Sequence record: PV472050.1
Length of the DNA: 64,000 nucleotides
Reading direction: 5' to 3' (one strand)
The translations under genes were made by a program, and so were the position numbers. The notes beneath the pieces were generated by a model. It was not told the DNA's origin and did no database searches. It worked only from the letters and a program-made list of their open reading frames with translations. Below, piece after piece: positions 4,718 to 55,663 of the stretch. The stretch's first letter is position 1; every line of letters begins with the position of its first letter.

Positions 4718-7186
4718 ATGTTTATATTAACTAAATTGATCCTAGAGAATTACATTCCTCTGTTAAGCAGCGGAATCAAACGGGTAGAATTGGATCTGAA
4801 TCATTTGGTTAACCTGTTGATCGCTCAGAACGGTGTCGGGAAAACCAGTATCCTTCGAGAAGCCAATCCCCTGGCTCCTGAGAATGCCAACTACCGCGGT
4901 ATTGGACGCAAGTACGTGGAGATTAAACGGGGATTGGACCATTTCGTTTTGGATTCTAAAACAGACTTAGGCAATGGTCACAGTTTCAAGTTTAACGGGA
5001 AAGAGTTAAACAAGAATGGAACCTTTACGGAACAGAAGGACTTGGTATGGATCCATTTCCGGTTAGACAGTACTATCAGCCGTATTCTGTCCGGGCTTAA
5101 ACCCAACAGTCTGTTTTCAGCGATGCCAGTGGCTCAACGTAAAGACTTCTTTATGTTCATCTACCCGAATGACACGAGTTACGCCTTAGGGGTCTTTAAC
5201 AAGCTTAAGACAGAACGTCGTGAACTGGCGGCTGCAATTAAGAACCAAGTCATGCGGTATACAGAAGAGAGTGCTAAACTCAAGCAGATCACCGAATGTG
5301 GTCCGGAAGAGCTGGAACGTCGAGTTAAGACGATTGAGACTGAACTGAGGGAGTCCTTGTTGGTACGAGGGGGTTTGGAGCAGGTGAAAGTAGACCCTGA
5401 GCTCCAAAGTAAGATTGATACCTTCAAACGTCTGGCTGAGCAGATGACATTGAACCGAGTCAGTGGGTTCTTTGAGACCGAGGCTGAACTCAGACAGGGA
5501 ATCGAAACAGTTCAAGCTATCTTGAGTGTTCACGAAGGCCAAGCCACTGCCATTCAAATGGTTATCAGTGAGCACGTAGGGGTTTTGGAAGGAATGGAGG
5601 AGATCAAAGAAGATCCCTTTGTCTTCCATCATCAAGCGGAACAACTCAAGGTGGAACTCACTGCTCTCCGGGAAGAATACAAACAACATGGGGTGCTATT
5701 GGGTAATTACCCTTTGTTCAACGATGACGCCTATGACTTTACCGGTTTGGAATTGGTGTACGAGGCCTTGGTGGCTCAATTGCGTCGGGTGGTGAATGCC
5801 AGTACTCCTGAGTTAACCGGAGGGCGGTATAAAGAGTATACCGTCAAACTGGAGCAAACCCGTAATCAACTGAGGGCCTCTAAGAATGAGCTGGACACTC
5901 TCACCCACCAGTTGAAACATTATGATGCCATGGAACTGGTGACTTGTCCGGAATGTACCCATGAATTCAAGGTCGGGATTACCGCGAATGAACTGCGTGC
6001 AGCACGGGTTAAAGCGGAAGCCCTTAAGTTGAGTGTGACTAAACTGGAGCGGGATGTTGAAACCCTGGAAAGATTAGTCGAACAGGACAGTGAGTGGTAC
6101 CACAGCATGTTAGCCCTACATCAGTTCTGCCGGATGAATGGTGATGTTAAGTGCCTTCCTGAACTGATTAAAGCATACGACATGGGTAAGTCGGATACCA
6201 ACATCCTTTTAAACGCCCTCAGGGCCTTCATGGGGCGTTTTAACTGTAAGAGACGTATCGATGCCCTACTGGAAGAAGAAAAGCTCTTAAACACGCGTAT
6301 AGGGCTGTTACAGAAGGATTCGGTATTAGACATCGCTACCTACTTAAAGAGTCTGGAACACGACCTGGAAGTGGAGAACAGTCGTATTGGTTTCTACCGT
6401 CGGCGTGTTGAACAGCTTATAAGGAACCTAAAGACCATCCACACCTACACCCGAGACCTGGAGACCCTCCGCTGTCTTAAAGACGAGATCTTCAAAGGGT
6501 TGGAACAGCAAGGGTTGGTGGAACTGCGTAAACGGGTTGATGAACGGATTCATTTGCTAACGGATGAGAAGGATGAATACCTCGCCTCCATTATCAAAAG
6601 CCGTTCGTTGAGTGCGGTTGTCGCGTCTATTTCGGAAGACATTGATCGTTTAAAACGCCGTCTGAAGATTGTGGATGGGTTAATGAACGGTCTGTGTCCG
6701 AATAAGGGGTTGATCGGTAAGCTGATGACGGATTTCATCAAGACCTATTGTGCCAATATGAATGCGGTGATTCAATCAGTGTGGAACACCACCCTGTTTG
6801 TTAAACCCTGCCATAAGGACAACGGGGATTTGAACTGGAAGTTCCCGGTGGTTACCGGTGATGATGAGCCCACGCCAGATGTCAGTGATTGCAGTTTGGG
6901 TGAAGCAGGTATCATTGACTTTGCGTTCCGTTATGTCGCCATTCGCTACCACGGCAACTTCCCCCTGATGCTGGATGAGGTGGGTACCACCTTCGATGAA
7001 ATCAAACGCGGTCGTTTCTTCAATTTCATTCACGAGTTAACCACCCAGAAGGACGCTAAACAACTCTTCATGATTAGCCATTACATTACTCAATACGGAA
7101 TGTTCACCAACCCGAATGTAATTGCGATGTGTTATGAAGGGTTGAGTTTACCGGGTGAAGTCAATCAACACAGTGTTATCAATTAA
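4718..7186 (+). CDS. sbcC: SbcC/Rad50-like SMC ATPase
   Basis: Walker A QNGVGKTS, long coiled coils with a central CPEC zinc hook, signature SLGE, Walker B LMLDE and H-loop ISH. Confidence 0.9.
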   Translation: MFILTKLILENYIPLLSSGIKRVELDLNHLVNLLIAQNGVGKTSILREANPLAPENANYRGIGRKYVEIKRGLDHFVLDSKTDLGNGHSFKFNGKELNKNGTFTEQKDLVWIHFRLDSTISRILSGLKPNSLFSAMPVAQRKDFFMFIYPNDTSYALGVFNKLKTERRELAAAIKNQVMRYTEESAKLKQITECGPEELERRVKTIETELRESLLVRGGLEQVKVDPELQSKIDTFKRLAEQMTLNRVSGFFETEAELRQGIETVQAILSVHEGQATAIQMVISEHVGVLEGMEEIKEDPFVFHHQAEQLKVELTALREEYKQHGVLLGNYPLFNDDAYDFTGLELVYEALVAQLRRVVNASTPELTGGRYKEYTVKLEQTRNQLRASKNELDTLTHQLKHYDAMELVTCPECTHEFKVGITANELRAARVKAEALKLSVTKLERDVETLERLVEQDSEWYHSMLALHQFCRMNGDVKCLPELIKAYDMGKSDTNILLNALRAFMGRFNCKRRIDALLEEEKLLNTRIGLLQKDSVLDIATYLKSLEHDLEVENSRIGFYRRRVEQLIRNLKTIHTYTRDLETLRCLKDEIFKGLEQQGLVELRKRVDERIHLLTDEKDEYLASIIKSRSLSAVVASISEDIDRLKRRLKIVDGLMNGLCPNKGLIGKLMTDFIKTYCANMNAVIQSVWNTTLFVKPCHKDNGDLNWKFPVVTGDDEPTPDVSDCSLGEAGIIDFAFRYVAIRYHGNFPLMLDEVGTTFDEIKRGRFFNFIHELTTQKDAKQLFMISHYITQYGMFTNPNVIAMCYEGLSLPGEVNQHSVIN

Positions 7187-7190
7187 TTTT

Positions 7191-7210
7191 AAACCTACAT
7201 TATTCATTTG
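7191..7210 (+). promoter_or_regulatory. Phage (early-type) promoter motif, copy 1
   Basis: aaacctacattattcatttg; matches the 10-copy consensus CTAYATHAY-N5-TG. Confidence 0.75.
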
Positions 7211-7225
7211 CAAGGAATACCTCTA

Positions 7226-7519
7226 ATGAACGTTCAACTCCCACGATCGGTTACCCTGGATGCCTATCTTCAACCGGACGGTACACTTATGCTGGGGCCG
7301 GGTCAGGCTAAAGTAACCATTAACTACCATTCGGATCCTCAAGAATCCATTAATGCGTGCATTGTCTTTGGAGGGGCGATGCAAGCGATTGTGACTTTTG
7401 ATGAAACCGGTCAGACCCCTGTGAGTTATACGCTGTTGAATCCGGGGGGCGATTACACCGTTGAGCAGTCGGTTCTTAACATTCTGTCCTATTTCGGAGT
7501 CAGTGCTCCGATGAGCTAG
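7226..7519 (+). CDS. Hypothetical protein (97 aa)
   Basis: ATG at 7226 after aagga, directly downstream of the promoter motif. Confidence 0.7.
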   Translation: MNVQLPRSVTLDAYLQPDGTLMLGPGQAKVTINYHSDPQESINACIVFGGAMQAIVTFDETGQTPVSYTLLNPGGDYTVEQSVLNILSYFGVSAPMS

Positions 7520-7531
7520 GAGTCATGAGTC

Positions 7532-7972
7532 ATGAACAAAGCTGAAGTGATAGAACGGTATCGCGAACTGGTCGAAGACCTCGCCCTCCCGCCGCATCAG
7601 GTGATCCTGTCGGCGGGTGCCGCCTTGGTGGTAATGGGCATCCGAGAGGAAACAAGCGACCTCGATGTGGATGTCCCTACCAGTGTGTTCAACTGGGCGA
7701 GTAATAAGTTCGGGGTTATCGAGAACGAAACCGTGAATAAACGGGTTCAATACACCCCCCTGGTCGATCTCCATGAATACGACGAGAACACAGGGGTGGT
7801 TTGTATTGAGGGGGTGTGGTTGTACAGCCCTACGGAGTTACTGAAACAGAAACACTGGTTCACGAAACTGGCTGATCGAACGGACGTTAAGACCCAACAG
7901 GATCACCGTGATATCCGCCAACTGGAAACGCTCACTCAGTCTCAACCATTCACTGCACGCGCATTGTTGTAA
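7532..7972 (+). CDS. Minimal nucleotidyltransferase (Pol beta-like superfamily), intact DxD
   Basis: ILSAGAALVVMGIREETSDLDVDV motif and a C-terminal K...R...QDHRDI helix. RBS ggag. Confidence 0.75.
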   Translation: MNKAEVIERYRELVEDLALPPHQVILSAGAALVVMGIREETSDLDVDVPTSVFNWASNKFGVIENETVNKRVQYTPLVDLHEYDENTGVVCIEGVWLYSPTELLKQKHWFTKLADRTDVKTQQDHRDIRQLETLTQSQPFTARALL

Positions 7973-7986
7973 GGTTAGGTTACGGT

Positions 7987-8481
7987 ATGTTTTACAGTCA
8001 ATTGGAAGTGGTAGAAGCCGTTCAACGGTTCTCTGAGGCTCATAACACCCCATTGGATAAGATCGCTATTGGCGGAGGTGGGGCTATCATGCTCATGGGG
8101 GGTCGTGAAACCACCTATGATTTGAACATTTGGGTGGACAGTCCGTTCTTTGAACGCATTGCTGAAACCCAGAACGCTCTCCTCAGTCCTATGAGAGACA
8201 ACGTGTTCCGCATTGAAACGACTATTGATTCCATGGATCAAACCGATCACGTCACCACACGCCGCCATTACTGGGTGCGTAAACGTAACCTCTATTTCCC
8301 CACCGTTCCTGTTAAGCTGGATCAATGTCCTGAAGTCTACATCTTCGATTCGATGTCACTGTTGATTCAGAAACGTGGTAGCTACAGTCGCCCTGAACGA
8401 GGACTCCGTCGTAAACAGGATTACAGCGACATCTGTTTCTTGAATGCGTTGCTAAAGGAAGAACACAAAGTCAGGGCTTAA
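7987..8481 (+). CDS. Second nucleotidyltransferase-like paralog with degenerate DxN
   Basis: IAIGGGGAIMLMGGRETTYDLNIWV and C-terminal LLIQK...RRKQDYSDI. Confidence 0.7.
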   Translation: MFYSQLEVVEAVQRFSEAHNTPLDKIAIGGGGAIMLMGGRETTYDLNIWVDSPFFERIAETQNALLSPMRDNVFRIETTIDSMDQTDHVTTRRHYWVRKRNLYFPTVPVKLDQCPEVYIFDSMSLLIQKRGSYSRPERGLRRKQDYSDICFLNALLKEEHKVRA

Positions 8482-8491
8482 CCTTAGGACA

Positions 8492-8517
8492 GTACCAGGG
8501 GATCACTCCCCTGGTAC
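8492..8517. terminator. Intergenic hairpin
   Basis: gtaccagggga-tcac-tcccctggtac. Confidence 0.6.
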
Positions 8518-8549
8518 GTCTTCCTCTTTATACGGTTTAGGAGATCACA

Positions 8550-10520
8550 ATGGGTAAACACTCGCCTGTTGAACGGATTAAATACCTCCATGAACAACTG
8601 ACGTATCACGCCCATCTCTATTTCGTCGAGAACCGGAACGAGATCTCTGATGAAGCGTATGATGCGTTGGAGCAAGAACTCAATGAGTTGTACGACCGAT
8701 ACCCTGAAATAGCGGCTAAGTTCGATTTCTATAATCGTCCCGTTCCTATTCATGAACCCTCCGGGGAAGCCATTCAACCAATACGGTTCGAGGAACCCAT
8801 GCTCAGCTTGAAGAAAGCCTTGAGTGTGGAGGAAGCGGACACGTTCCTGTTGAAGTTCCCGGATGGTACAAACTTCTTTTACGAAGAGAAACTGGATGGG
8901 TTGGCCCTGGAGCTGGTGTATGAACAGGGACAACTGGTCAGTATGAGTACCCGGGGATCTGGATTAGTCGGGGAAGATGTGACACATTCCATAGTCCTCT
9001 TCGACGAAGCCACACTTCCTCGTGCCTTAAGGACGCTTCCTGATCGTCATAAACCCCAGGGGGATCGATTGGTTATTCGGGGTGAAGGGTACATCAGTCT
9101 GGAACGCTTCGATTCTCTGAATGAAACAGGGAGTAAACGGTCCAATCCCCGTAATGCCGTGAGTGGGTGGGTGCGGTCCCTCCCTCAGAACCAACGGGAG
9201 GATATCCGAGGAACGCTGTACTTCGCGGCGTATTACGCCAGTGATCGATTGGGGACGAAGGCCTATTCTGAATTGAGACAGGTTCTCTTAGGTTTAGGGT
9301 TTGGTGTTCCTGAATCTAGGGATTGGATTGCAATCTCAGAGAACCGGAGGGGGAACATTCGTCCGGTGGACGGGATTGTGATTAAAGTCGACAAGTTCAA
9401 GGAACAAGACGCCAGTGGAAATGGGAGTAAATTCCCTCACTGGGCGATTGCTTACAAGTTCCCTGCGGAAGAAGCGTTGACCCAGGTTGAAGGCTGTATC
9501 TGGAACACCTCTCGGTTTGGTCGGGTAGTTCCGGTGGTCCAGTATACCCCTGTAACGATCCAAGGGGTTATCTGTCAGTGTGCATCGTTGGATAACTACG
9601 GTTCGTTTATGGACTTAGGGTTATCAATCGGGGATCGGATTGTTATTACCCGGAACAACGATGTGATCCCTCGGTTGAACCGAGTGGAGGAGTGTGGGGA
9701 AGGAGACCTCCTAGAAGCGCCTACAAGCTGTCCTAGCTGCGATTCTCTCCTAGAGGTAGTGGTGGGTAGGGACAGTTCCGAACTCGTCTGTAATAACGTC
9801 GCAGAGTGCCCTGCGCAGATCGTTATGCGGTGCGTAACGACGTTTGATAAGTTTGGACTGGATGTAGACGGTTTAGGACCCGTTAAGGTCAGTGAATTGG
9901 TTGAGAAAGGATGGGTTAAACAACCGGCTGATATACTTACCCTTCCGGAAGACATTAAGGATCAATGCCTTACCCCGACGACTCGAAGAGGTTTGGAGCG
10001 TGTTCTTCAGGAACCGGTTCCTTTACACCGCTTCTTAAAGGCATTGGGTATCCCGGATATTGGGATCACCTTGGCTAAACGCCTGGCCAATGCCATCCCT
10101 GAAGGGAAGATCGAAGAATCCCTTACCAATCCTAAGTTCCTACAAAGTGTACGAGGGGTTTCAGTGGGGATTGCTTATCGGGTCGTGAACGCGTTCGACT
10201 CCCCGGTCTTTAAGGACAACTTCCACGCCCTAAAAGGGATGTTGACTCTCCGGTACACCGGAACGCAGGACGACTGCATTAAAGTCTGTATTACCGGCAA
10301 CATTGGACCTTCCCGAGGAGAACTCTGTAACCTGTTCGCTAAGGAAGGGATTGAACTCAGTGATCGGCTTACTCAGGACTGTGCCTTCGTCATTGTGGGT
10401 GATCGTCCTGGTAAATCGAAACTGTTAATTGCAACCGAATCGGGTATACCTATGCTAATTGCAAAGGATTACTCGAGCATCGACTCCCTCATTCAGTTCA
10501 TTAAAGGACACCGAGAATGA
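8550..10520 (+). CDS. ligA: NAD-dependent DNA ligase
   Basis: N-terminal Ia domain (ISDEAYDAL), adenylation motif EEKLDG, RGE, DGIVIK, WAIAYKF, Cys4 zinc finger (CPSC...CNNVAEC), HhH repeats and a C-terminal BRCT-like domain. Confidence 0.95.
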   Translation: MGKHSPVERIKYLHEQLTYHAHLYFVENRNEISDEAYDALEQELNELYDRYPEIAAKFDFYNRPVPIHEPSGEAIQPIRFEEPMLSLKKALSVEEADTFLLKFPDGTNFFYEEKLDGLALELVYEQGQLVSMSTRGSGLVGEDVTHSIVLFDEATLPRALRTLPDRHKPQGDRLVIRGEGYISLERFDSLNETGSKRSNPRNAVSGWVRSLPQNQREDIRGTLYFAAYYASDRLGTKAYSELRQVLLGLGFGVPESRDWIAISENRRGNIRPVDGIVIKVDKFKEQDASGNGSKFPHWAIAYKFPAEEALTQVEGCIWNTSRFGRVVPVVQYTPVTIQGVICQCASLDNYGSFMDLGLSIGDRIVITRNNDVIPRLNRVEECGEGDLLEAPTSCPSCDSLLEVVVGRDSSELVCNNVAECPAQIVMRCVTTFDKFGLDVDGLGPVKVSELVEKGWVKQPADILTLPEDIKDQCLTPTTRRGLERVLQEPVPLHRFLKALGIPDIGITLAKRLANAIPEGKIEESLTNPKFLQSVRGVSVGIAYRVVNAFDSPVFKDNFHALKGMLTLRYTGTQDDCIKVCITGNIGPSRGELCNLFAKEGIELSDRLTQDCAFVIVGDRPGKSKLLIATESGIPMLIAKDYSSIDSLIQFIKGHRE

Positions 10521-12421: not shown

Positions 12422-13765
12422 ATGAAAAGCTTTATTGATGTATCAGTAGTAGAAGATGGGGGCAAACAGTTCCTCTTCGGTATTACTGCGAATCAAAAGA
12501 CAGGACGACCCGAAGTCGTAGGATATACCGATCCTGATTATTTCAGAGAGGGTGTTGACCGTGTGTTTGAACAGCTTATCCGGGAAGAACAAAGAAAGGA
12601 AGCGGATATTAAACTCCAGTTGGCCTTTATTAAGGCGGTCAAGGAACATCCCGGTAAACAACTGCAACTCACGCTTTGCTACAGCGCAAATGGACCGTCG
12701 GCTGGAGAATTTTATTGGGTGGAGGATCGGTGTTATACAGTTGACGGAGTGTCCTTCCTATCGAAAGCACCGGTATGCATCTATCATAAGAACTGTCTGG
12801 ACGGTACTGCGGCAGCTTGGGCGGTAAGAAGCGCGCTCCCCTTGGTTGAATTGGTGGCTATGAGTTATCATGATGATCCGTACGAACTCTTTGGTTCGGG
12901 GTTGGAGTATCTACAAGGGAGAATGGTCTATTGTGTTGATTTCAGTTTTAAGAAAGCGGTTGTAGAAGCGATTGCTAATCTACCGGATACAGGCTTGCTG
13001 ATCTTGGATCATCACGAGAGTGCTCAACGGGAACTGGGTGAACTCGTCGTTGGTTATTCCGGGAAATCAACGCTGGGTGATCGGGTTGAGATTATCATCG
13101 ATATGACACGTTCAGGCGCTAAGTTGACGTACGACTACTTCCACCCTCAACAACCGACGCCTCCGGGTATTCTGGCAGTACAAGATCGGGATCTGTGGAA
13201 ATGGGAGTACGAAGGCAGTAAGGAATGGACCGCGGCCGCCTTTGGGTATCCCCTCACCGTTGAGAGTTTCGATAAACTGATTCATCGGGATTACCAAGAC
13301 GTGGTAGAAGAAGGTCGTACAGTCCTTCGTAAGCAGGAATTGGATGTTGAGAAACTGCTCCCGAGTGCGCGGCCTTACACGTTGGAGGGTTACAACTGCT
13401 TGATTGTTAATGCCAGTTATTTCCACGCCAGTGACGTAGGGGATAAACTGAAGGGTCGAGACGGCATTGACTTTGTAGTCACTTACATGGATGGTAAGGA
13501 TAGCCGTATCTTCTCTCTACGGGGTAAGGATAAAGTGAATCTAGCGGAAGTGGCTGAACGTTTTGGAGGAGGCGGCCACCCTAACGCAGCAGGGTTCACC
13601 TTGAGCTTCAACGATCCTCGTTTCTCTCGATCTCACGCTGAGCTGTATTCGGATAAACAGGAGGGGGATTACATCCGGTACCCGATCGTAGGTATTCCAT
13701 TTGATGGGGGGTGGTTAGTATACAAGCTAACCACCCTGTTCTCTCTATTTTTTTTTTCGGGATAA
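12422..13765 (+). CDS. DHH/DHHA1 family phosphoesterase with an extra N-terminal region
   Basis: YHKNCLDG, VDFS, ILDHHES, DRDLWKW and GGGGHPNAAGF motifs. ATG at 12422 after gtggag. Confidence 0.88.
   Translation: MKSFIDVSVVEDGGKQFLFGITANQKTGRPEVVGYTDPDYFREGVDRVFEQLIREEQRKEADIKLQLAFIKAVKEHPGKQLQLTLCYSANGPSAGEFYWVEDRCYTVDGVSFLSKAPVCIYHKNCLDGTAAAWAVRSALPLVELVAMSYHDDPYELFGSGLEYLQGRMVYCVDFSFKKAVVEAIANLPDTGLLILDHHESAQRELGELVVGYSGKSTLGDRVEIIIDMTRSGAKLTYDYFHPQQPTPPGILAVQDRDLWKWEYEGSKEWTAAAFGYPLTVESFDKLIHRDYQDVVEEGRTVLRKQELDVEKLLPSARPYTLEGYNCLIVNASYFHASDVGDKLKGRDGIDFVVTYMDGKDSRIFSLRGKDKVNLAEVAERFGGGGHPNAAGFTLSFNDPRFSRSHAELYSDKQEGDYIRYPIVGIPFDGGWLVYKLTTLFSLFFFSG
13709..13757 (+). terminator. Intrinsic-terminator-like hairpin plus T10, lying inside the 3' end of the DHH ORF
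   Basis: gggtggttag-tatacaag-ctaaccaccc, followed by a run of 10 T (13748-13757). Confidence 0.55.
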
Positions 13766-13770
13766 GTGGA

Positions 13771-14196
13771 ATGAATAATTACGGGTATGTGGATGTGTCC
13801 TTGGTAGGACCTGAAGTAGAGGAAATCTTTGGCTTGCTCTTGGAGTGTGGTATTGCACCGGCTGCGGAGTACAACCTGCATTGTACCCTGATGTACGATG
13901 AACAGGCAGAAGAACCGCTGGTAAAACTGAATCCTGATGCGAAATTCACCGCCTACGTGACAGGGATTGACGTACTGGGAGATGGGTTGGTGTTTAACCT
14001 TACCAGCAAAGACCTCGCTGATGAACACCGTAGGTTGAAAGACGGTGGGTATACCCATTCCTTTGATGCCTTCTTACCGCACATGTCTGTCACCTATGAC
14101 TTCGATGAATACGACATGTTGAAAGTGAAGCAAGCGTTTGCAACCTGGGGTGGTCGACAACTCACCTTCAGTAAAGAATCGTTCGGAACCAAATAA
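13771..14196 (+). CDS. 2H phosphodiesterase, Acb1 (anti-CBASS, T4 gp57B)-like
   Basis: Two H-x-T/S motifs (LHCTLMY, PHMSVTY) about 67 aa apart. The segment LVFNLTSKDLADEHRRLKDGGYTHSFDAFLPHMSVTY parallels T4 Acb1 [37 protein letters not shown] (recalled). Confidence 0.8.
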   Translation: MNNYGYVDVSLVGPEVEEIFGLLLECGIAPAAEYNLHCTLMYDEQAEEPLVKLNPDAKFTAYVTGIDVLGDGLVFNLTSKDLADEHRRLKDGGYTHSFDAFLPHMSVTYDFDEYDMLKVKQAFATWGGRQLTFSKESFGTK

Positions 14197-15683: not shown

Positions 15684-15703
15684 ACACCTACATCATTCTT
15701 GTG
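15684..15703 (+). promoter_or_regulatory. Phage promoter motif, copy 3
   Basis: acacctacatcattcttgtg. Confidence 0.65.
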
Positions 15704-17492: not shown

Positions 17493-17512
17493 AAACCTAC
17501 ATTATTCATATG
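17493..17512 (+). promoter_or_regulatory. Phage promoter motif, copy 4
   Basis: aaacctacattattcatatg. Confidence 0.8.
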
Positions 17513-23675: not shown

Positions 23676-23695
23676 AAACCTATATTACTCAGGTG
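23676..23695 (+). promoter_or_regulatory. Phage promoter motif, copy 5 (upstream of the chaperonin)
   Basis: aaacctatattactcaggtg; contains TATATTAC, the phiKZ early promoter core. Confidence 0.8.
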
Positions 23696-38587: not shown

Positions 38588-38607
38588 AAACCTACATAAT
38601 CAGGGTG
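38588..38607 (+). promoter_or_regulatory. Phage promoter motif, copy 7
   Basis: aaacctacataatcagggtg. Confidence 0.8.
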
Positions 38608-55643: not shown

Positions 55644-55663
55644 AGACCTACATTATTCGTTTG
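55644..55663 (+). promoter_or_regulatory. Phage promoter motif, copy 10
   Basis: agacctacattattcgtttg. Confidence 0.7.

Follow-up and report, generated by a model that had tools for sequence, protein, structure and literature searches.

A tandem pair of small nucleotidyltransferase-fold proteins in EL-like jumbo phages: a predicted enzyme and a conserved, apparently non-catalytic paralog

The 64,000-nucleotide stretch of sequence record PV472050.1 analyzed in this study (the window) carries the orthologs of two adjacent genes of Pseudomonas phage EL, gp120 and gp121. By modeled fold and family assignment, both products almost certainly belong to the polymerase beta (Pol-beta) type of nucleotidyltransferases (NTases), and the residues that each retains suggest that gp120 is probably active, with gp121 being inactive yet functional. 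Over positions 7200-8700, the window matched Pseudomonas phage MIZ-Pa99 at 100% identity, and phage EL together with eight more EL-like isolates at 97-99%; in 10 of 10 EL-like GenBank records, EL gp120 and EL gp121 are labeled 'hypothetical'. No third copy of this type (family phrog_12854) was found elsewhere within the 64-kb window. The two genes, hereafter called gp120 and gp121, are as follows:

7532..7972, plus strand: gp120 ortholog, predicted minimal Pol-beta-fold NTase with an intact catalytic signature (supported by phrog_12854, AlphaFold2, Foldseek, and the ratio of nonsynonymous to synonymous substitution rates, dN/dS)
7987..8481, plus strand: gp121 ortholog, predicted conserved non-catalytic paralog (supported by phrog_12854, AlphaFold2, Foldseek, monophyly, and its own invariant residues)

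The gp120 open reading frame (ORF) encodes 146 aa and that of gp121 encodes 164 aa, with a gap of 14 nt between them. A first-pass annotation, made from the letters of the window, had described two adjacent paralogs of about 150 aa with a Pol-beta-like motif and a K...R...D..D helix; the ORFs, coordinates and residues were all present as described, and both proteins belong to phrog_12854. When the proteins were compared with this family's profile, gp120 matched with an E value of 6.6e-47 and gp121 with 8.2e-45, each over profile positions 1-136 of 137, sequence matches that are far beyond chance. In a pairwise BLASTP comparison, the N-terminal 52 aa alone aligned (31% identity, E 3e-7). When a profile of the gp121 clade was compared with a profile of single-copy family members, a match of 99.4% probability (E 6.4e-22) was obtained; because this match spans 136 columns, gp120 and gp121 are true full-length paralogs. 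The motif of gp120 comprises G29, G36, R38, T41 and D43-L-D45-V-D47, followed by K107, R116, K120, D124 and D127, and gp121 has the same motif residues except that D-L-N-I-W stands in place of D-L-D-V-D. Thus the [DE]h[DE]h pair on strand beta2 (positions i and i+2), present in gp120 as D43-L-D45, is missing in gp121. The carboxylate set of gp120 is complete (D43, D45, D47 and D79) and H81 is also present, whereas gp121, in gp120 numbering, has D43, N45, W47, W79 and R81 and retains R38, T41, K107, R116, D124 and D127. The first-pass annotation had spoken of an intact and a degenerate copy; the distribution of carboxylates agrees with it, but the word 'degenerate' proved misleading, given that the D-N-W form is a fixed clade under purifying selection, as described below.

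The fold was examined in AlphaFold2 models of the single chains, built with alignments of relatives from the profile search. The mean predicted local distance difference test score (pLDDT) was 94.9 for gp120 and for gp121, and the predicted template-modeling score (pTM) was 0.87-0.88. In both models, the secondary-structure elements follow the order helix, strand, helix, strand, helix, four strands and two helices, which, as modeled, is the layout of Pol-beta-type NTases. In gp120, a strand at 25-27 precedes a helix at 28-34, with G29 at the beta1/alpha2 turn; position 29 is Gly in 94% of 141 aligned family members, and gp121 carries G-G-G there. Residues D43-D47 of gp120 lie on beta2 (strand 44-48), and D79 lies on strand 78-82. 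When the models were searched against the Protein Data Bank (PDB) with Foldseek, ranks 1-18 for gp120 and 1-25 for gp121 were all NTases (probability 0.93-1.0, template-modeling score TMq 0.40-0.59), which, together with the pLDDT values, bore out the Pol-beta-like fold proposed earlier. Ranks 1-18 for gp120 included Mimivirus and Megavirus poly(A) synthase, the fungal NTase-like protein 5uvd, ANT(2'')-Ia, MenT1, TM1012, vaccinia VP55 and LnuA, with MenT3 and JHP933 slightly lower than rank 18 (TMq 0.48-0.59 for the NTase matches). For gp121, MenT3/TglT, 5uvd, MenT1, TM1012, Mimivirus poly(A) polymerase (PAP), ANT(2''), JHP933, LnuA and MenT4 were retrieved. In a viral structure library, jumbo-phage homologs ranked first (TM up to 0.80), and PAP catalytic subunits came next. 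At the level of sequence, Pfam, NCBIfam and PADLOC scans with both proteins and a first family profile gave chance-level matches only, as did a search of PDB sequences with both proteins and two family profiles.

We then asked how the substituted copy is distributed among relatives. The comparison set consisted of the window, 14 EL-like loci from metagenomes (protein identity to gp120 of about 35-52%), and contigs reached via representative proteins. In all of the roughly 20 lineages that have a D-N-W gene, the gene immediately upstream of it is a gp120 ortholog, separated from it by 0-100 nt. The upstream gene (copy 1) nearly always has D43, D45, D47, D79, H81, K107, R116, K120, D124 and D/E127. 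In the downstream gene (copy 2), the usual set is D43, N45, W47, an aromatic residue (W/Y) at 79, R81, K107, R116, D124 and D127, with exceptions at loci L011 and L012, which deviate at position 43 or 45. Sixteen invariant columns are common to all 14 copy-2 sequences; they include N, W, an Arg-x-x-Asn on the strand that matches D79/H81 of copy 1, and several Arg/Lys of the C-terminal helices. In a neighbor-joining tree, copy 2 formed a single clade on a long branch, and copy 1 of EL-like phages formed a separate clade that branched among the single-copy proteins found in other jumbo phages. By sequence comparison, an old duplication in the EL-like lineage gave two fixed forms. Among four isolates, dN/dS was 0.12-0.29 for gp120, 0-0.27 for gp121 and 0.07-0.15 for the 5' part of the neighboring ligase gene, all calculated from small counts. 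The possibility that gp121 is a decaying pseudogene was ruled out by its low dN/dS, its monophyly and its clade-specific invariant residues: a fixed monophyletic clade with invariants of its own under purifying selection is not a decaying duplicate. We infer that gp121 is incapable of two-metal catalysis and that it binds something.

A further tandem was found in Erwinia phage PhiEaH1, where an intact gene, gp184 (L031:6950-7420), is followed by gp183 (L031:7424-7777), a truncated copy of 117 aa with A43/N45 that matches the family with an E value of 1.5e-6; the tandem lies downstream of an SbcC gene. This is either a second, maybe independent, active/inactive pair, or the separation reflects a long-branch effect in the tree.

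Loss of metal-binding aspartates was not confined to copy 2. On four EL-like contigs, copy-1 orthologs were found in which D43, D45, D47 and D79 are all replaced:

L003:5564-5992: copy-1 ortholog without the metal-binding aspartates
L038:4001-4447: copy-1 ortholog without the metal-binding aspartates
L039:4001-4441: copy-1 ortholog without the metal-binding aspartates
L040:3926-4459: copy-1 ortholog without the metal-binding aspartates

These four contigs were chosen since their representatives looked degenerate, and thus form a biased sample. The orthologs mostly retain G36, R38, H81 (N in L003), K/R107, R116, D124 and E127 and still match the family profile with E values of about 1e-32 to 1e-46. 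On L040, an extra family fragment of 106 aa lies between the two copies. Because a loss confined to the metal ligands occurred several times, a binding role has to be taken seriously.

Two irregularities were noted in database records of these phages. In Pseudomonas phage vB_PQ1 (L034, PQ516283.1), the gp121 ortholog is annotated as three pieces (two breaks), and the SbcC-like and gp119 orthologs are in two pieces each; with 488 coding sequences in 184 kb, fragmentation extends over the whole record and looks like sequencing or assembly error, not biology. The taxonomy line of PV472050.1 (MIZ-Pa99) reads Pantevenvirales; Straboviridae, an assignment that is probably wrong: the sequence shares about 98% identity with phage EL, an Elvirus, and the record of a sister isolate gives Chimalliviridae; Elvirus.

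The extent of the family was assessed by a profile search of 1.84 billion cluster representatives, which yielded 443 clusters (defined at 50% identity) at E<=1e-3; 203 of them reached E<=1e-10. Of these 443 relatives, most are stand-alone proteins of 130-170 aa. Among 157 representatives, D43 and D45 were both present in 140, five were of the D-N-W type, and 12 were degenerate in other ways. In the 140 intact members, T41 was found in 125, H81 in 120, K107 in 124, D124 in 138 and D127 in 119; T41, D43, K107 and D124, which are kept in 86-99% of members, stand in the same order as the catalytic residues of MenT1. In the cultured-phage collection, the family occurred in jumbo phages only, namely EL-like Pseudomonas phages, Ralstonia RP12/RP31/FLC/RSF1, Burkholderia FLC6/FLC8/SURPRISE13, Pseudomonas D6/RVTF4 and Erwinia PhiEaH1; the viral structure library added structural homologs in 201phi2-1, Noxifer and Phabio. 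In IMG/VR, 19 of 23 loci were on contigs of 184-311 kb and the other four on contigs of 47-106 kb. The family was thus seen here in jumbo phages only, that is, in Chimalliviridae and viral contigs of similar size. Two scans with narrow peptide patterns, which covered 185,579 bacterial and archaeal species at one genome per species, detected no relative; this is weak negative evidence. When ten long representatives (>175 aa), all of which match phrog_12854, were scanned against Pfam, three metagenomic proteins (P0085, P0125 and P0152) were found to carry a C-terminal GNAT acetyltransferase fusion, with P0125 also containing a NUDIX domain. A PHROGs search of the C-terminal extensions gave nothing beyond one family of unknown function, and the contigs of P0125 and of typical stand-alone members were short or had no Pfam match.

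The family was then compared with characterized systems. The only sequence-level link to a named family was Pfam DUF6036 (PF19502), which was matched at E<=1 by 17 of 141 members (best 3.8e-7). In P0160, residues 11-141 aligned with DUF6036 positions 10-133 of 164, with a score of 22.1 bits, below the gathering cut-off of 23.6; a search of PDB sequences with P0160 found no NTase, and gp120 and gp121 themselves had no DUF6036 match at E<=1. DUF6036, described as 'Nucleotidyltransferase of unknown function', resembles the family in size (about 140-190 aa), and the match extends over the whole NTase domain. Because DUF6036 is itself uncharacterized, the link gives a fold and no function; phrog_12854 stands as an outlier of DUF6036.

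MenT1 and MenT3 (TglT), tRNA NTase toxins of the DUF1814 (AbiEii) class from Mycobacterium tuberculosis, were among the top fold matches (8an4/8an5, TMq 0.55-0.59; 6j7q, E 1.5e-4). The conserved catalytic residues are T39, D41, K137 and D152 in MenT1 and S78, D80, K189 and D211 in MenT3, and the substitutions D41A, K137A and D152A abolish the toxicity of MenT1 (PMC10435456). The same order, T/S-x-D...K...D, is found in gp120 and gp121, both of which have T41, D43, K107 and D124. The phage proteins differ from MenT in their length (146-164 aa, compared with 184-195 resolved residues in MenT1 and 287-292 in MenT3/4) and in their setting, a phage genome rather than a chromosomal toxin-antitoxin module. 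Neither AbiEii (PF08843) nor NTP_transf_2 or Polbeta was among the 25 listed of the 51 Pfam families matched by the 141 members, PADLOC gave no match, and no MntA-type structure appeared in the top 50 fold matches of either model; given the 25 families listed, AbiEii could be matched weakly by one member at most. The earlier proposal of an MNT/AbiEii-type enzyme therefore holds as a fold-level likeness to MenT/AbiEii, but not as sequence-level membership; likewise, the structure search that it recommended against MenT, AbiEii and MntA retrieved MenT1 and MenT3 for both proteins but no MntA in the top 50. No AbiEi/COG5340- or MenA-type antitoxin and no HEPN gene were found in the neighborhood, where the neighbors are an SbcC-like gene, gp119 and an NAD ligase gene; the first-pass annotation had been right to report no adjoining HEPN gene or recognizable antitoxin.

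TM1012 of Thermotoga maritima (2ewr, 2fcl) was the best size-matched fold match (156-157 residues, TMq 0.55-0.58, TMt 0.53-0.55), but identity is 10-11% and its function is unknown, such that it adds no mechanism. ANT(2'')-Ia and LnuA share with the phage proteins a compact NTase domain with a short helical C-terminal part and a similar length (TM about 0.5-0.55), and these enzymes are acidic, as is the phage family; they differ in that identity is 9-14% and that the phage family has a non-catalytic partner. Of the Pfam models for this class (PF10706 and relatives), Aminoglyc_resit was matched by one of 141 members (E 0.065). Finally, among the PAPs of Mimivirus/Megavirus (4wse, 4p37) and poxvirus VP55, 4wse was the top PDB match of gp120 (E 9e-4, TMq 0.53), and PAP catalytic subunits of nucleocytoplasmic large DNA viruses recurred in the viral structure library matches. 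In the Mimivirus/Megavirus PAP, a catalytic NT subdomain is accompanied by a duplicated subdomain of NT fold (PMC4402537), a pairing that parallels the active/inactive pair of gp120 and gp121. In the giant-virus enzymes, however, the two NT folds reside in one chain of 495-498 residues with dimerization and extra domains, whereas here they are two separate small proteins. A literature search found no papers on gp120/gp121, DUF6036 or phrog_12854, and a core-genome paper on Chimalliviridae and its supplements contained no mention of the gp120/gp121 proteins.

The surroundings of the pair were also examined, and the following features were located:

7186..7204, plus strand: promoter-like 19-base motif (the phage EL record has a 'putative phage promoter' annotated at the corresponding site)
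7192-7204, 15685-15697, 17494-17506, 23677-23689, 38589-38601 and 55645-55657, plus strand: sites of the 13-base core of this motif
7226..7519, plus strand: gp119 ortholog, 97 aa, which opens the unit (annotated from the ATG at 7226; the ORF extends to a TTG at 7208)
8486..8522, plus strand: strong stem-loop, candidate terminator or RNA-end hairpin, beginning five bases past the gp121 stop

The 19-mer had three matches in the window at <=3 mismatches, compared with 0.01 expected, and its 13-base core had six at <=2 mismatches, compared with 1.4 expected, all on the plus strand. From its sequence, the 13-base motif looks like a class of phage promoters; of its six sites, only the first is annotated in the examined part of the EL record. 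An upstream promoter had been suggested in the first-pass annotation, and the recurring motif at 7186..7204 supports it, leaving aside the temporal class ('early') given there. In 14 of 14 metagenomic EL-like loci, the gp119 gene is flanked by the SbcC-like gene on one side and by the NTase genes on the other. It has a dN/dS of 0-0.06 among the four isolates and matches phrog_16812 (unknown function); a gp119 profile had no match in the PDB, and neither a Pfam match nor a relative of known function was detected. Single-copy relatives of the NTase family in other jumbo phages have no gp119 homolog alongside. A gap of 12 nt separates gp119 from gp120. The core of the hairpin is a perfect 11-bp inverted repeat (8492-8502 / 8507-8517), with a minimum free energy of -29.2 kcal/mol (z = -3.8; 0 of 200 shuffles fold equally well). 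A stem of at least 8 consecutive pairs was found at the same location in 13 of the 14 diverged EL-like loci; the hairpin was missed by a simple terminator scan because it lacks a T-run. The promoter-like motif, gp119, the gp120/gp121 pair and the conserved hairpin thus form one compact unit.

In all 14 loci, gene order was conserved: gp116, a baseplate gene (minus strand), the SbcC-like gene, gp119, the NTase pair and the NAD ligase gene, followed in nearly all of them by gp123 and an RNase H gene. The enzymes of the neighborhood are SbcC-like, NAD ligase, RNase H, DHH/DHHA1 and Acb1-like 2H phosphodiesterase proteins. The idea that the pair contains a nicotinamide mononucleotide (NMN) adenylyltransferase serving the neighboring NAD ligase was rejected, as adjacency to the ligase is limited to the EL-like clade; to our knowledge, no NMN adenylyltransferase has this fold. 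The ortholog of EL gp126 (13771-14196, plus strand, 141 aa), annotated as 'RNA ligase', matched Pfam PF23474 'Anti-CBASS protein Acb1' (E 3.5e-11; 43.5 bits, cut-off 27) and carries a pair of H-x-[ST] motifs like those of 2H phosphoesterases; judging from these sequence features, it is probably a cyclic-nucleotide-degrading anti-defense gene rather than a ligase. Immediately 5' of it lies the ortholog of EL gp125 (12422-13765, plus strand), a DHH/DHHA1 phosphoesterase (DHHA1 E 1.8e-7) of a class that includes nanoRNA and cyclic-dinucleotide hydrolases, and the two might work together. The NTase family and an Acb1-like gene were also found close together on L027, a 231,788-bp IMG/VR contig whose gene order differs; there, the sole intact family gene has an Acb1-like neighbor (E 1.2e-12) and an RNase H gene at distances of 1.7-4 kb:

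L027:2705-3295 and L027:4986-5444: Acb1-like and RNase H neighbors of the family gene

On these grounds, we tentatively propose, at somewhat less than an even chance, that gp120 and gp121 are a catalytic and non-catalytic pair acting on the 3'-OH of RNA or of a nucleotide. In this mechanism, gp119, gp120 and gp121 would be co-transcribed from the promoter-like motif to the conserved hairpin. The catalytic subunit would be gp120, with every residue expected for two-metal nucleotidyl transfer, and it would move a nucleoside monophosphate from a nucleoside triphosphate to a 3'-OH in the infected cell, belonging either to an RNA end (tRNA-like or transcript) or to a molecule derived from a nucleotide. 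The non-catalytic partner, gp121, would bind nucleotide or substrate, form a heteromer with gp120, and give substrate recognition or regulation. A heteromer is plausible because the two genes strictly co-occur in tandem, and we put a physical partnership at about an even chance. An RNA or nucleotide 3'-OH is favored as the acceptor because of the MenT-like residues, the MenT and PAP fold matches and the nucleic-acid- and nucleotide-enzyme neighborhood, although as a claim of its own this acceptor is a possibility that we advance with some doubt.

Several observations weigh against the proposed pair. The isoelectric point of gp120 is 4.9 (net charge -8) and the family median is 5.8; an acidic isoelectric point is unusual for a nucleic-acid-binding enzyme and nearer to that of antibiotic NTases. 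Column 79 is Asp in just 88 of the 140 intact members and Ser in 39, and thus the third carboxylate (D79) is not firmly assigned. A TM of about 0.55 between model and structure establishes the fold but does not separate NTase subfamilies, and it is from order and spacing that we infer the equivalence of residues with those of MenT. Two of the contigs with Asp-less copy-1 genes (L038 and L039) have no copy 2, and the persistence of copy-1 orthologs without metal-binding aspartates means that catalysis is dispensable in part of the clade. Moreover, MenT1, MenT3 and MenT4 are described as monomers (PMC10435456), and therefore a heteromer is not implied by homology.

Such persistence would fit a family of sponges or decoys, which act by binding only and sequester nucleotides, immune signals derived from them or the 3' ends of RNA, with catalysis by gp120 being ancestral or accessory. 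Metal-binding aspartates have been lost repeatedly and independently, in copy 2, in the four copy-1 orthologs and in 12 of 157 representatives, mostly those nearest gp120, while R38, T41, H81, K107, R116, D124 and D/E127 were kept, and the Asp-less genes remain full length (E about 1e-45). Copy 2 has also gained the invariant W, R, N and Y and extra Arg/Lys, which we judge suited to base stacking and phosphate binding, and an Acb1-like, signal-degrading gene lies 5.3 kb downstream of the pair, with another 1.7 kb from the L027 family gene. Nevertheless, DxD is kept by 140 of 157 representatives, and of the 20 paired lineages, about 17 have preserved an intact copy 1, which suggests that catalysis matters where the pair exists. 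We know of no sponge family (Tad, Acb2) with an NTase fold, and we consider a binding-only role unlikely.

The acidity of the family instead recalls enzymes that modify small molecules, in which case gp120 would nucleotidylate a hydroxyl of a small cationic molecule (for example, an antibiotic resembling aminoglycosides or lincosamides, or a metabolite resembling polyamines) and protect the infected cell or the infection cycle. ANT(2'')-Ia and LnuA, of similar size, are among the best fold matches (TM 0.5-0.55), one member weakly matches Aminoglyc_resit (E 0.065), and a few relatives carry GNAT/NUDIX fusions; in bifunctional resistance enzymes, domains of these types act on small molecules. 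The lack of any bacterial or archaeal relative in the two pattern scans would be odd for a resistance-type enzyme, however, and a fixed non-catalytic partner is without parallel in the antibiotic-NTase class. Furthermore, the T-x-D...K...D pattern is the one described for MenT, and the GNAT fusions fit tRNA-directed chemistry equally well, given that acetyltransferase toxins acetylate charged tRNA (PMC10435456). There is thus a small chance that a small molecule is the substrate.

The fold matches to MenT1 and MenT3, which were at the top for both proteins, and the order of residues described as catalytic, common to MenT and gp120, might also indicate a MenT/AbiEii-type toxin, with gp120 extending tRNA 3' ends for host translation shut-off or addiction and gp121 or gp119 inhibiting gp120. 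The small gp119 gene lies upstream of gp120, as does MenA1, a small protein encoded upstream of menT1 (PMC10435456). Against this, AbiEii/DUF1814 is not among the 25 listed of the 51 Pfam families, PADLOC finds no defense system, gp120 and gp121 are much smaller than MenT3/4, gp119 looks beta-rich from its sequence and resembles no known antitoxin, single-copy relatives in other jumbo phages lack a neighboring gp119 homolog, and a lytic jumbo phage relies on host translation, all of which makes a toxin very unlikely. Least probable of all, and barely credible, is an MntA-like protein AMPylase by which gp120 would nucleotidylate and neutralize a host HEPN toxin, as it shares with gp120 only the Pol-beta fold and small size, no HEPN gene is adjacent, MntA-type structures are missing from the top 50 fold matches, and NTP_transf_2 and Polbeta are missing from the 25 listed of the 51 Pfam families.

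Taken together, these data assign a fold and a likely chemistry to a phage family annotated as 'hypothetical' (phrog_12854, 443 clusters). The family recurs across jumbo phages, among them the cultured nucleus-forming phages EL, RP12, RSF1 and PhiEaH1 and, by structure, 201phi2-1, Noxifer and Phabio. The NTase fold class is well known; the searchable literature contains no description of the family, of its observed occurrence in jumbo phages only, or of an enzyme and pseudoenzyme fixed as a pair in this way. The locus offers a natural case of a predicted enzyme and a fixed pseudoenzyme paralog kept side by side across deep divergence, with repeated loss restricted to metal-binding residues. 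If the substrate were an RNA end or an immune signal, the pair would be a new type of phage counter-measure; if it were a small molecule, gp120 would be a phage-borne modifying enzyme. A more specific idea, to which we give a low probability, is that the pair is a counter-defense device of nucleus-forming phages that acts on cytoplasmic nucleotide chemistry. Its target would be either an immune signal derived from a nucleotide or a 3' end of RNA that has been damaged or targeted. The non-catalytic copy, like the Asp-less variants, would capture this target, and the catalytic copy would cap or extend it and thereby make it unusable by a host effector or toxin, with the pair working beside the nearby Acb1-like phosphodiesterase. 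If true, this would be an undescribed, enzyme-plus-pseudoenzyme way to disarm signaling or tRNA-directed immunity.

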